NCBI GenBank assembly: GCA_020891255.1
Contig: BQFW01000002.1
Span: 2,170,001 to 2,234,000 of the forward strand
DNA from: Entomortierella parvispora E1425
Taxonomy: Eukaryota; Fungi; Mortierellomycota
Direction of reading: 5' to 3'
DNA length: 64,000 nucleotides
Positions 3,321-62,699 of the stretch are shown piece by piece. Below the pieces are notes generated by a model. That model had not been told where the DNA came from. It ran no database searches and worked only from the letters and a program-made list of their open reading frames with translations. Position numbers and translations under genes: made by a program. Numbering within the stretch: position 1 is the first letter of the stretch; the number at the start of each line of letters is the position of its first letter.

Positions 3321-8084
<4,764 letters not shown>

Positions 8085-8521: not shown

Positions 8522-8572
8522 TGTGGTGTAGTAGATGTGGAGTCCCGGTCCACATCCATCGGAGTAGAGATA
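8522..8572 (+). repeat. 5' stub of a family-D LTR, cut by a Crypton end
   Basis: TGTGGTGTAGTAGATGTGGAGTCCCGGTCCACATCCATCGGAGTAGAGATA matches the start of the D LTRs (rc of 33492-33542 and 40976-41026). Confidence 0.9.
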
Positions 8573-9491
8573 TAGACTACGAGTTCAAATTTTAGCCGTG
8601 TCCAGGCTCATGTCCGACCATGGACACGGTGTCCATCACGTGACCTGTCCCTGGAGGATTAGCGAGATGAATGCCATATTGGGACCCCATCGTCCTGTCG
8701 GAAAATAAAGAATAGCGATGTGAATTTGCCATTGGTTGCCGTCGTCTCGGGTTTTTTTGCCTGCACGATCTCCCTGCAATTTTTATCTTGGGTCTCGCGA
8801 GCTTTTTGAAAAGGGTTTATTCATGGGACCATGTGCGACCCCTTGAGGCAAACATTTTTTTTTTTTCTTTTTCTTCTTCAAACCCTGCTCCCCCCTCTCC
8901 CCTGCTTTCTCTCCTCCCAACTGCACTGTCCTCCCTTTCCCCCCCCCCCCCCCCCTAAGGATGTCTGAGATCACTTTCAACAATCAACAAGGTCAAGCTC
9001 ACCAGGTCGATGGCTTGGATGGTGGCATCTTGAATCACCATGCTAGCCAAACGCGCGATAGTCGAGTCCATTCCACGCATTCTGGTCGTCATGCAGGCAC
9101 CTCTGCACTCGACAGACGTACACATTCTGGCCGCCACAGTGGTCGCCAAGTACAAATAGGCCCGGTACTCCAAGCAACCATGCATCACACTCACTGACCT
9201 GTGGGTGGATGTGACCATGAGCGCGCGCGGCGCGCGCGCGTGTGTGTGTCTATGTGTATGCAGGGTTTTTTTTGCATTCTTCCGCTTGGTATTATCTCTG
9301 CCTCATCTCATTCTCGTTTCACTTTCGCTCGCGTCGTGTTTGAAGGTGTTTAACTATTGATCCATAAACTCCTCAAACACTCAAAAGCTTTGGAGAAGAG
9401 ATCAGTTTATTGTCTTACAAAATCTACAACTGCTTCTGTTTTTTCCTCAAGTCCTCTCGAATGAAGTTGATCGTTTTATCTTTGTAAGTGA
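8570..9491 (-). mobile_element. 3' end of a Crypton-like element (left copy, inverted), truncated by LTR element B
   Basis: Reverse complement aligns, with substitutions and indels, to 61663-62607, including the last codons of the GCR1_C-like ORF and the same terminus ...GAACTCGTAGTCTATAT. Confidence 0.85.
8961..9197 (+). CDS. 78-aa ORF antisense to the Crypton recombinase gene, containing THSGRHAGTS; expression unproven
   Basis: ATG...TGA open here and in the second copy (61952-62191), which differs by substitutions and an in-frame 3-bp indel. Confidence 0.4.
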   Translation: MSEITFNNQQGQAHQVDGLDGGILNHHASQTRDSRVHSTHSGRHAGTSALDRRTHSGRHSGRQVQIGPVLQATMHHTH

Positions 9492-9953
9492 TGAAAAGTA
9501 TATGGCACACGGAGTCAGTGAGAATAAGAGAGGGATCTCTGTTTTATTGAACCGGTCAGGATATTATCCTGACCGTTGCCTCCGTGACTGTGCCTTGCTG
9601 CCAGCAGCATCATTTGCCGCTGCGCCACCAAATTATGCGACAGAACTTCCCCTCCCATGGAGAGCGAAGCGCGGGTTGACACTACTGGTCAGTGAGAGGG
9701 TAAAAAATAAAACCTCTATGAAAATGTTATGGTTGAGGAAAAGTGAAAAACCTCTTGTCTTTGAGGAAAACCATGTGGTAAAAAACCTCTTTGCCTGTTA
9801 GGTCTTCTTTGCGTAGTAGCGTTTTAGTTCCTCGTTCTCGTTTGGTATCTCTTCGATCTTTGATCCTGTGGTCGCTTATTTTCTTTGAGAAGTTGCCAAT
9901 ATTCTCTGATACATTGTTTTTCAATAAAGTTTTCTTCGGGTTCCCAAGTGTAG

Positions 9954-45065: not shown

Positions 45066-45869
45066 CGTATACTGAAGGGGAATTCATCAGGATCCTTTGC
45101 TATCTCTGGCGATATCTTCCTATCCGATCTGTCGAGGGAAATAAGCGCCAGTACAAGTCTGAGAGGCGCTTCCCATATCTTCGCGAGCGTCTTGCTCAAC
45201 TCTTTCGTCACCATGCATTGATGCGAGACGAAGATATACGCAACATCACCCTCAGCAATATGTTTTGTATCCAAGCAAAACATCCTGGAGCGGGATCCGA
45301 TCTGGCGACTGGAATTGTCTGTTGTATTTCCCGAGGCAAGACCAACAAGAAGGGCGTGAAGCTGTATAGCACTGTATTCCGCCACAAGAACGTTCTTCGA
45401 TGCACAGTAGGAGGCTTTGCATTTTACATGCTGGAGCGTTGGCAGGTAAGAGGAAGTTTTGGTGCTCGACTGTCCATCATTCGTCTCACAAGGCTGATAG
45501 ATAGTATAGGGACTCATGCTTTTTCCAATACTTTCATCGTGATTTCTGGTAGGTTGACAAGGAGCCTCTTCCTAACTTTCTTGATCCGGACGATTGGAGT
45601 GGTGTGATGCTTTTGGCTGATGCAAATCCTGCAGCTCGGATGGGGTTGAGCAAAGACCGAAAGTCAACCTCTGGAGGAAAAGTCCAGAACCGTAAACAAG
45701 CAATTGATCCAAGGACTCAAATCGCCACCACCACCAAGGCCTTGTTGGCTTGTGGAATTGCATCAACCAAGATCACTCACGGTGGCCGTCATGCTGGAAC
45801 CTCCGAGGCGTACCACCTAGGCCTTGATTTTGATCATATCCGACACCTTGGTCGATGGGTCATGGGTCA

Positions 45870-52534: not shown

Positions 52535-53646
52535 GGTCAGATGGAGAACTTCTATGCTCCCAAGAACCCCACTGTAGGGGCGTTTTACATGGCGCACTTC
52601 AACAAGAGAGATGAGCCTTACAAGATCGAACGCGACCTTGTCACCCCCGACCTCGAGCTTCAACGACTGATTTTCCCCTGGATTGAAAACGTCATGGATG
52701 AAGCCGATGGTAGGCCATGGGCGGAGGTGTGTGCAGATGAGATGCGAGGTGTCAACCCATCCGAGTCCACACTGAAGGATGTCTTTTGGAAGCCAATTGC
52801 TCTTGACGAGCTATCAAAGACCACGGCATCTTTGACCAGTAGCGTCCTGATCGATCGAATTGCATTCTTAAAGCTCATGGTCCGGATGAGGCGAGTAATC
52901 CTACAGGATGCGGTGATGATGTTGACTTACTGTATACCGACTCCACTGGTGAAACTCTCAACAACCGGCTTTTATCCTCGGTGGAGCTGAAACACATTTT
53001 CTCTGGCCCTCTCTTCCGCAAGCTCCAGACTGATCTCCTAGCCGCCATTGCTCTTCACCAGGAGCAGGTAAAGATCATCAATGACAGTGTGCAATTGACC
53101 ACAGAGAAAGTCAGTGCCTTGAACACACTTGGGTCTGTGATGGTGAACAGTGGGATATTTTGGGCTCTCACTTACAATATGACTATCGAGACAAGAAGAA
53201 GGATCTTTATGTTCTGCCCTCGCACTCCTTTGATAAGGGAGTGCGAGGGTGGCTTGCTACTAAACTAGGTTACTAAAATAAACATCCCTATTAATACACT
53301 TCAAGGCCCACGATATGCCACAAACAGCACCGCCCAGATGCAAACTCAGATGCATTCAAATTGGGACTTGGTGACGGAGACACGGGAAGAAATCAAAGGA
53401 CTCAAGGAAACATTCACGGAAAAGTTTGTCCGACAGGAGGAACGACAGAATCAACAGGATGAGTGGCAAGTGCAGCACTGGCTCCATCTTCAACATTCAG
53501 TTCCGCCTCCAGCTGCAGTCAGACGACCCTTTGTTGTCAGTGCTGGTGTTTCCCAACCTCAACCACCGTAGGCTGTGCACCAACAACCACGCCAGCTACC
53601 ACCTCCTCGGTACGAAACACCACCACCGCTGCAACAAATGAGATGG

Positions 53647-59700: not shown

Positions 59701-61373
59701 AATGGTACCTTCTTATGTTCGTTCTTCGAGAAGATTCCAGAACCGTCCTTTGTTTTGAAATCCGCTGAGTATTAGCTGAGCCACAGCATTTTCGTCTTTC
59801 ACTGCTGTTTTTCGACCCATTGTCCACCTTGAACACTCGCCTTCTTTCTCCTTCTCTCCTTTCGCGTCATTCCATCCTTTTACAACCTCTTCCAACCGTC
59901 AAGGATGAAGTGCTCAGTCCCTTATTTTGTCTTTGTCGGATACCGATTTTTTTTCCACGACCATTTTTCTCACATGGGCTGAATTAGAGCAAGTAATTCA
60001 ATTAATTGTTTTTTTTTGGCACATGCAGAATTCGACGCACTACCTCCCACGTTATAACCTACTTTGAAACCACGACCTTTCTATGTTCTTTTCTCGTGTG
60101 GATTTCAAAACTGCCCTTCGTTTTGAATTTGGTTGATTATCGAGCGATTTATTGCCCCCCCCTTTTTTTTTTATCGTTCAATACCCGTTATCTTTTATTT
60201 GTTGCCTTTCGCTCGATCTTCTACCTTGTTCTTGCCGCCAGAGTCTCGAGTCCCAAGCCGAATCATGTCTTACCAGTCTTGTTTCCGTCGAGCATTGCGC
60301 CCCTCACCCTTAGCCGTTGAACTTCAACTCAGGATCCCGTTGACAAGTACCGCGGACTAGGCGCGTACGAGAGAAACAATACCGACGATCATTGACCGTT
60401 GATGTACAGGAATCCCTTGGACTGGATCCCGGAACACTGGTGACATCCATCTGGATATGAATAACAAGATCATAATATATCTGATAAGAGTCTCTGGATA
60501 TTGAGATTGTTTATTGGGCCTACCTTATGATCAATGTTATTATAATCTTTCAAGTACAACAAGCAAGGATAAGAATCGCTCCCTCCAGTCGAATAGGCCA
60601 TTCGTCTGGCTCAAGAACATTCTTATTCGAAGTGGCACTCAATGGATCCCGAATTGAGTCCAGTCTTCGCGCTCGCACGTAGTAATGACTGCCCTTCAGT
60701 CGTTATTTACTTTGTAGTTGGCCGCCACTACCGTTCCTTTATTTGCTTCTGTTCTACTATATGTTTTGGTCTCCTTATGTCGACTTTGGGGATCTTAGCT
60801 CTTGGTATTAGCAACTCACTTGGCACTCGCCTTGAATAGCTCGTATGAGGCAGCTGGGATCGGTGTGGTGTAGTAGATACAGATCACACATTTGTAGAAG
60901 TCAGTTTAGATACCCTTAAAAGATTGCGTTAATATAATTTCGTGTTCAGAGCAGTAATTGCTCTGGGTCGCTTCTCCTTCCCTACTTTTTCGTTTGCCTT
61001 TTGTTTGATCGTTACAGAACACATACACATCCCCCCCCACTTCCTGCCCGATATCCCCTTTGCAGCAGCAGCAAGATCGACGCCTTAATTCCGATTGCTG
61101 AGACTATTAGTAGCTAGTCTAACCTCCTCCCCCCCCCCTTTACCTTTGGATATCACAGACCCTGTTCTGCCGATCAAGCTTGCCTTCGTACAAGTCTTGA
61201 GCTTCCACCGGACTGAGATCTTTATTGATACTTGGTTCACACAGTTTAGACAGTGAGATCCTGCAACGTCTATCCTCCCCCTCGCAAGCAATCCCCTTTC
61301 CCTTGATCACTTGTGACCAGCCCCTCTCTCCTTGAGCTACGACCGATCCCCAACCCATTGTAGCAACACCACA
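53738..61373 (+). mobile_element. Non-autonomous two-LTR family-C element (LTRs 53738-59316, split by A2, and 60864-61373; ~1.55-kb non-coding core); 4-bp TSD CCGC
   Basis: CCGC at 53734-53737 and 61374-61377; removal rejoins the Crypton frame SLP|PPPPFTQ; PBS at 59329-59346; no convincing core ORF. Confidence 0.9.
53994..59058 (-). mobile_element. Full-length chromovirus A2; LTRs 53994-54104 and 58948-59058; 5-bp TSD TCTAA; gag 57909-58829; pol frameshifted twice
   Basis: TCTAA at 53989-53993 and 59059-59063; near-identical to A1. Confidence 0.96.
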
Positions 61374-61951
61374 CCGCCACCGCCACCATTTACTCAAAAC
61401 TTGACTCACTCGCCTCTTAATTCTTCTGATCTCTCCACTAAAGGATATCTAATGCTTCCCGATAACAAAAATCTGACCCTTCGTATTCTCTGGACCGAGT
61501 ATCATGGCCCAATTGCAGAAGCAAAGAAGAATGACCCAGCTTATCCTTACACTCAAGCGCGCAAAAAGGCTCTGCAGAGGCGAACTCAGCTTGTAGACAA
61601 CATCGAAGCCATGGCAAAGAAAAATGAAGTTCCTGTCGAGTCGATTATTGCAACACTGGGGGTCACTTACAAAGACAAAACGATCAACTTTATTCGAGAG
61701 GACTTGAGGAAAAAACAGAAGCAGCTGCAGATTTTGTAGGACAATAAACTGATCTCATCTCCAAAGCTTTTGAGTGTTTGATGAATTTATGGGTCAACAG
61801 TTAAACACCTTCAAACACGACGCGAGCGAAGGTGAAACGAGGATGAGATGAGGCTGAGATAACACCAGGAGGAAGAATGTAAAAAAGACTCCTCCATACA
61901 CACAACACACATACACAGGCGCGCGCGCTTGTGGTCGCATCCACCCATAGG

Positions 61952-62191
61952 TCAGTGAGTGTGATGGATGGTTGCTTGGAGTACCGGGCCTATTTGTACT
62001 GGGGGACGACCACTATGGCGGCCAGAATGTGTACATCTGTCGAGTGCAGAGGTGCCTGCATGACGTCCAAAATGCGTGGAATGGACTCGACTATCGCGCG
62101 TTTGGCCAGCATGGTGATTCAAGACGCCACCATCCAAGCCATCGACCTGGTGAGCTTGACCTTGTTGTTTGTTGAAAGTGATCTCAGACAT
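61952..62191 (-). CDS. 79-aa antisense ORF in the Crypton 3' end (THFGRHAGTS); second copy of 8961-9197
   Basis: Open ATG-TGA frame conserved between the two copies. Confidence 0.4.
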   Translation of the reverse strand: MSEITFNKQQGQAHQVDGLDGGVLNHHAGQTRDSRVHSTHFGRHAGTSALDRCTHSGRHSGRPPVQIGPVLQATIHHTH

Positions 62192-62699
62192 CCTTGGGGG
62201 AAGAGAGGACAGTGCAGTTGGGAAGAGAGAAAGCAGGGGAGCGGGGCTTCAAGAAAAAAAAAAAAAAAAAAAAGGTGTTTGCCCCCAAGGGTCGGGTCGC
62301 ACCTGCTGGTCCCCATGAATACAGTAAACCCTTTCAAAAAACCAGACAATCGCAATCGCCATCCTTCCAAGACCCAAGATAAAAATGACAGGGAGATCGT
62401 GCAGGCAAAAAAAACCCGAGACGACAGCAACCAATGGCAAATTCACATCGCTAGTTTCTTTTTTCCGACAGGACAATGGGGCCTCAATATGGAATTCATC
62501 TCGCTAATCCTCCAGGGACCGGTCACGTGATGGACACCCGTGGACACCATCGGACATGGTCGGACGTGAGCCTGGACACGGCTAAAATTTGAACTCGTAG
62601 TCTATATTGTATATGTAAAGTGACAAAAAGGTAACAGACTTTGATAGAGAAAGAAAGAGATACTACAGTGGCCCAGCTCATAGCTCTGATCATAAAAAA

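Follow-up and report, generated by a model that had tools for sequence, protein, structure and literature searches.

The locus and its host element

The window analysed here is a whole 64,000-nucleotide stretch (C2:2,170,001-2,234,000) of Entomortierella parvispora (Mortierellomycota), for which a genome note describes a 38.7-Mb Nanopore/Illumina assembly and stranded RNA-seq (PMC8759367). From ~9.5 to 61.4 kb (9491-61375) it is occupied by a ~52-kb nest of Ty3/gypsy-type LTR retrotransposons, and at each of its two edges lies a 3' fragment of a single CryptonF/Ndc10-like transposon; these fragments, copies A and B, are inverted with respect to each other and their 3' ends face outward (Table 1). 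The two blocks, A at 8570-9491 (+) and B at 62607-61663 (-), form inverted repeats ~52 kb apart with 85% identity, and in the 39-Mb genome the block was found as A and B only, with no third copy. In copy A the end of the Crypton gene is retained, its last codons matching protein P0005, up to a 153-bp LTR end (9491-9643) which has many 100% copies genome-wide. The recombinase gene of copy B has been scattered by LTR insertions into the two pieces listed in Table 1 and a last one at 61372-61739, which were mapped with P0005, a protein of 87% identity, and with its contig, L057. The element represented by both fragments is dead.

Matches to the 153-bp LTR end form one tight cluster per contig on ~11 contigs, a distribution which suggests that the 52-kb nest is a regional centromere. 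The central part of the copy B gene holds ~170 bp (53150-53323) that are extra with respect to L057. A TAG stop is common to A and L057 (9424-9432; L057:2981-2989), and in copy B (61731-61739) it is replaced by CAG with three further codons of frame. Because of this common stop, the idea that a small open reading frame (ORF) downstream of it, the subject of this study, is spliced onto the Crypton gene as a 3' extension was rejected.

Table 1. Features of the two Crypton fragments and of the small ORF (window coordinates)
Feature	Position	Strand	Remarks
Crypton copy A	8574-9491	-	3'-terminal ~920 bp only; LTR truncation at 9491
Crypton copy B	61372-62604	+	GCR1_C-like gene end and 3' region to element terminus; tblastn with P0005, blastn with L057
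Copy B recombinase piece with box II (45775-45804) and GRW	45066-45869	+	Interrupted by LTR element; NDC10_II
Copy B recombinase, following piece (QMENFYAPKNP onward)	52535-53608	+	P0005/L057 mapping, profile HMM
Conserved 3'-terminal region	62367-62604 (A: 8573-8795)	+	TGGACAC repeat cluster and CACGTG; 76% identity to L057
Lineage-specific segment, copy A	8806-9285		T/CT/C tracts, ORF, GC/GT microsatellite; absent from L057 (TRF, blastn)
Lineage-specific segment, copy B	61869-62359		Alignment with L057
Small ORF, copy A	8961-9197	+	78 aa, 14% His
Small ORF, copy B	61952-62191	-	79 aa, THFGRHAGTS, one codon more; 91% aa identity to A
Box-II-like motif 1, THSGRHAGTS	9075-9104	+	9/10 residues as in window recombinase; HMM domain match
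Motif 2, THSGRHSGRQV	9120-9152	+	Second HMM domain; HHalign partner HLGRW
In-register opposite-strand ORF, copy A	8955-9218	-	87 aa
In-register opposite-strand ORF, copy B	61931-62530	+	199 aa

The recombinase carries THGGRHAGTS and RHLGRW at 45775-45860, which are the box II (HxxR) and the downstream H/W motif of the core, and passes the Pfam cut-off for NDC10_II (35.1 against 26.3 bits). Its identity is 87% with P0005/L057 and 50-60% with Ndc10-domain proteins in annotated genomes' records. The Pfam match of the gene end to GCR1_C was under the 23-bit cut-off (15.8 bits, E = 0.017), and 20 Crypton-like proteins aligned with this C-terminal domain at their own C-termini, with E values of 1e-12 to 1e-68. 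CryptonF elements are known to combine a tyrosine recombinase with a GCR1_C domain and to end in short direct repeats only (4-6 bp), without terminal inverted repeats (PMC3212892). Common to these elements (Goodwin et al. 2003; Kojima & Jurka 2011, PMC3212892) and to the one described here are a single protein with a tyrosine-recombinase core and a 'zygomycete'-grade fungal host; a GCR1_C-like domain at the C-terminus is a probable further common feature and the want of terminal inverted repeats a presumed one. The genome contains the 5' end of neither A nor B, and L057 is truncated by the ends of its contig. The published architecture is without an antisense ORF in the 3' region (PMC3212892), whereas one is present in A and B, within an extra segment of ~490 bp that belongs to one subfamily and is lacking in its closest relative. 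That Cryptons can hold a second coding region is known from oomycete elements with extra proteins such as a C48/Ulp1 peptidase (PMC3212892), but those are large conserved domains with homologues and the ORF considered here is an orphan without a predicted fold.

In A as in B the 3' terminus of the element reads ...CGTAGTCTA, and TAT follows it. The final ~100 bp contain three TGGACAC repeats and a conserved GTCACGTG (8598-8635; 62531-62579; L057:3340-3400), all retained in A, B and the metagenomic relative L057. Six of the 13 TGGACAC sites in the window fall in the two Crypton ends, and these repeats are candidate recombinase-binding sites. Solo matches of 41-61 bp (90-93%) to the 3'-terminal bases were found at L062:5125-5185 (C11:~255.1 kb) and L063:5248-5288 (C13:~2.323 Mb), with no Crypton gene near them in either case; these could be footprints or truncated ends.

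Comparison with the nearest relative

A metagenome scan yielded one relative, L057 (Ga0302182_10015896, 3446 bp), which is a near-complete element with an intact two-exon gene of 87% identity to that of copy B. In a three-way alignment two stretches of L057 match A and B, one of ~130 bp directly behind the stop and one of ~240 bp at the terminus (76% identity), and by the same alignment and blastn it has ~55 unrelated bases in place of the ORF-bearing ~490 bp. As the segment is missing from L057, the family as a whole does not include the ORF, which either belongs to one subfamily only or was lost in L057, gain in the A/B lineage being inseparable from loss in L057 with one outgroup. The homology between A and B and that between B and L057 break at one base, just past ...CGTAGTCTA. 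This common breakpoint indicates that A and B were inserted separately and that the segment was already part of the element when this happened.

The small ORF and its motifs

The features that drew attention to the ORF were all recovered. It lies in the Crypton 3' end, is present in both copies with nine substitutions and one 3-bp in-frame indel between them, and converges on the recombinase stop at a distance of 226 nt in A (stop 9426-9424) and 212 nt in B (stop 61737-61739). By BLASTP motif 1 matches the window recombinase at nine of ten residues, and relatives P0003, P0006, P0007 and P0023 read THSGRHAGT(S), identical to it. A weaker echo, RHSGRQV against RHLGRWV, was seen as well, and HHalign pairs these two stretches. 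Motif 2 is either a second box II or a version of the RHLGRWV stretch; compared with the box II of two other Crypton lineages (L073, L075) it agrees at 8/8 amino acids and 22/25 nucleotides. The remainder of the tyrosine-recombinase catalytic set is lacking, there being HxxR-like and GR motifs only, with neither the upstream Arg box nor the Tyr region, as the initial annotation had said of the latter. On the opposite strand A and B each have a frame in exact codon register that is as open as that of the ORF itself, and these opposite-strand ORFs gave no Pfam family and no homologue in a word-index protein search and a six-frame search of the genome.

One claim stood in part. It had been pointed out that six of the codons in motif 1 differ from those of the recombinase at synonymous third positions only, and that the match was therefore one at protein level. 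The count is right (22 of 30 bases are identical), but it fails as independent evidence of selection on the protein, because differences confined to synonymous positions are forced once amino-acid identity is the basis on which a match is chosen. They would also be explained by an origin from another Crypton lineage, as the invariant core would match whatever the source.

Is the echo more than chance?

Comparison of the ORF with 28 Crypton proteins by BLASTP gave gapped alignments over residues 24-64 with 43-51% identity in 39-47 aligned positions, at E values of 5e-4 to 1e-3 for the 28-protein database that would rise to near 1 at the scale of the whole six-frame window. A profile HMM of box II (75 columns, 19 relatives) was searched against 1577 six-frame segments of the window, and both ORFs ranked directly behind the true gene pieces at E = 0.002-0.003 on the scale of the window. 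A caveat that applies to these matches is that scores of 14-14.5 bits carried a large bias term of 8.5-10 bits and that the aligned part consists of two motifs of 10-12 residues only. This, together with the fact that ~17 core residues carry the signal, that 64 kb were scanned (a look-elsewhere effect) and that an ORF is expected here from composition, would be in keeping with a compositional resemblance in which a frame rich in His, Gly, Arg and Ser, lying in a low-complexity spacer, happens to spell box II, with neither descent nor function behind it. Such a coincidence is unlikely in view of the controls. None of 3000 dinucleotide shuffles of the block 8570-9400 attained the observed profile score and 1-2 of 3000 did so when the ORF alone was shuffled. 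HHalign placed THSGRHAGTSA...LDRRTHSGRHSGRQVQ on the stretch from box II to HLGRW, leaving a gap of 7 residues (probability 85.6%, E = 5.6e-6, 27 columns). A search of the 39-Mb genome for the codon pattern TH.GRH.G gave 12 matches, and a reversed control gave 0-1. About one is expected genome-wide, yet two occur within 45 nt inside a Crypton, and the two ORFs hold four of the 12; most of the others fall in Crypton genes belonging to different lineages or in recognisable relics. The resemblance to the recombinase box II thus appears to go beyond chance, although it is short.

Searches for a wider relationship were negative. No such echo was found in the flanks of the other Crypton lineages of the genome that were compared (L053, L054 and L056). 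A search for the source among the Cryptons of the genome turned up none with long colinear DNA homology, and the best matches, of 22/25 nt, are not decisive. The whole block was also compared with the 28 Crypton proteins by blastx, and no second colinear recombinase piece was found; the ORF as an exon of a larger inverted recombinase gene, which had been offered as one of its possible origins, was therefore rejected.

Other traces of Cryptons were met in the course of these searches. L053 (C2:1580000-1589999) contains at ~4172-7961 (-) a near-intact P0001-like Crypton between exons of a 4-aminobutyrate-aminotransferase-like gene, and since there are near-identical copies (87-100% aa) in L054 and L056 this family looks recently active. 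Two identical open frames of 47 codons with THLGRHLG ... IRGVGMW (L064 and L065, on the - strand of C1 near 503.2 kb and 522.4 kb) seem to be a further recombinase relic in decay.

Is the ORF a gene?

When the 480-nt segment was subjected to dinucleotide shuffling, 78 or more codons without a stop were found in 2786 of 3000 shuffles (93%), and on both strands in 1422 of 3000 (47%). The open frame itself is expected by chance from the composition of the segment. The substitutions between A and B fit neither of the in-register frames, with seven non-synonymous and two synonymous changes in the ORF (+) frame and six and three in the opposite (-) frame, so that the comparison of both strands which the initial annotation had called for gave no coding signature. 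By a binomial estimate, seven non-synonymous changes out of nine reject strong purifying selection (omega up to 0.2, p of about 0.01), but as inserted copies drift neutrally such substitutions have low power and are no test of selection on an active master element. Codon log-odds of the ORF were 0.02-0.04 per codon and did not set it apart from the +1 frame, compared with 0.15-0.27 for eight real genes.

Protein-level searches gave a similar picture. No Pfam family was found on either small ORF and no homologue in a word-index protein search with the ORF, and a full HMMER scan of the 78-aa ORF against 1.84 billion representative proteins returned 0 matches at E <= 0.001. Six-frame searches of the genome with both frames found A and B only and no paralogue, and the exact protein is missing from the collection that holds the EMPS_ annotated proteins of the genome. 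Language-model recognition (ESM Atlas) was 1253 for the ORF, against 2300 or more in 91% of known-family proteins, and for both frames it was as for shuffled sequence with no usable match. The AlphaFold2 model (single sequence) had a mean pLDDT of 58, and residues 21-60, the motif-bearing centre, had 48-53 and are predicted to be disordered. A tandem-repeat scan called flanking simple tracts only and did not call the two motifs as a tandem repeat. The ORF has no place as a conserved accessory gene of the Crypton family, being absent from L057 and from L053, L054 and L056 and showing no coding pattern.

It had been proposed that the ORF encodes a mini-protein mimic or regulator of the recombinase. 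Such an antisense small protein, with two box-II-like motifs modulating the recombinase or its DNA sites, could be read into the ATG with A at -3 and a CT-rich tract before it, the retention of the frame in both copies with an in-frame indel, the match of the motif at protein level and the transposition of the carrier subfamily at least twice. It is nevertheless very unlikely, and the proposal is unsupported: the frame is of a length expected by chance and is open on the opposite strand too, seven of its nine substitutions are non-synonymous, its codons are non-genic, its disordered centre offers no fold to present an active-site motif, its product is an orphan that is also missing among the annotated proteins, and the nearest intact and presumably mobile relative does without it. 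Primate LINE-1 ORF0 is a lineage-specific antisense small ORF in the untranslated region of a transposon. Both ORF0 and the frame described here are small, antisense to the main gene and found in one lineage, but ORF0 has an antisense promoter and evidence of expression and translation, whereas the present frame is known from sequence and is expected by chance.

The core of the ORF is better conserved than its surroundings. Identity between A and B is 96.2% in the core compared with 88.8% in the rest of the block (Fisher p = 4e-4) and with 91.7% in the non-repetitive flanks (p = 0.035). Together with an indel that is in-frame only, this hints at constraint, gene conversion or a locally lower mutation rate. 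The ~240-bp core may have been kept for a role as DNA or RNA, such as a cis element or an antisense transcript, or may have been homogenised by gene conversion, and the frames would then be by-products. The preservation of both in-register frames with substitutions that fit neither would agree with this, and inverted repeats ~52 kb apart are a layout that permits conversion. However, the excess over the non-repetitive flanks is marginal, and as regards a DNA or RNA role no Rfam family was matched, folding was not in excess on either strand (z = -0.07 and -0.48) and the core is missing in the intact relative L057. These explanations are held to be quite unlikely.

A probable decayed piece of recombinase-coding DNA

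On balance it is probable, from the comparisons above, that the frame of the ORF is open only incidentally and that what lies beneath it is a short, decayed and lineage-specific piece of Crypton recombinase-coding DNA. As best explained, the piece spans box II (HxxR) to GRW, some 30-45 codons with small in-frame deletions, and lies in reverse orientation within the ~490-bp lineage-specific segment, in the 3' non-coding region of one E. parvispora Crypton subfamily. The 3' region would first have captured a fragment from a different Crypton copy or lineage, for instance through nested insertion and subsequent deletion or through aberrant repair. The composite element would then have transposed at least twice, giving rise to copies A and B, both of which would later have been broken by LTR retrotransposons. 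The relic presumably has no function. The suggestion of the initial annotation that a second, inverted recombinase gene left the ORF behind as a relic agrees with the evidence, in that there is a short but real similarity, confined to box II-GRW, in a segment that is missing in the nearest relative. What counts against a relic is the shortness of the similarity, the two HMMER-aligned motifs with their high bias and the failure to find a source lineage with extended colinear homology.

Rearranged and nested transposon relics include inverted partial copies, such as maize Mu killer. As in that type, a fragment of the same enzyme-gene family lies reversed within or next to the element. The fragment here differs in being ~100-140 nt long and, in its best 30 nt, only 73% identical to the gene of the element that carries it, and is thus too short and too diverged for silencing by double-stranded RNA.

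A more far-reaching but highly speculative idea, which must be given the slimmest of chances, is that a Mortierellaceae Crypton subfamily evolved an antisense micro-protein with two TH.GRH.G motifs out of captured recombinase scrap, and that it tunes transposition. If so, tuning might operate e.g. by competition for the DNA or protein contacts of the recombinase, and the higher conservation of the core between A and B would be a trace of that constraint.

Implications

As it stands, the ORF is ordinary transposon debris, a rearranged bit of an enzyme gene within a dead element. Its meaning is mostly cautionary, as two signals that resemble selection at protein level are not evidence of it. The first of these is an open frame within a stop-poor, low-complexity stretch, and the second is a set of 'synonymous-only' differences that remain after a match has been selected on amino-acid identity. 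At the same time a Crypton subfamily and its 3' terminus have been delimited in Mortierellomycota. Two inverted copies of this subfamily flank a retrotransposon nest which is possibly a centromere, and this arrangement may be of interest for the evolution of Cryptons and Ndc10.
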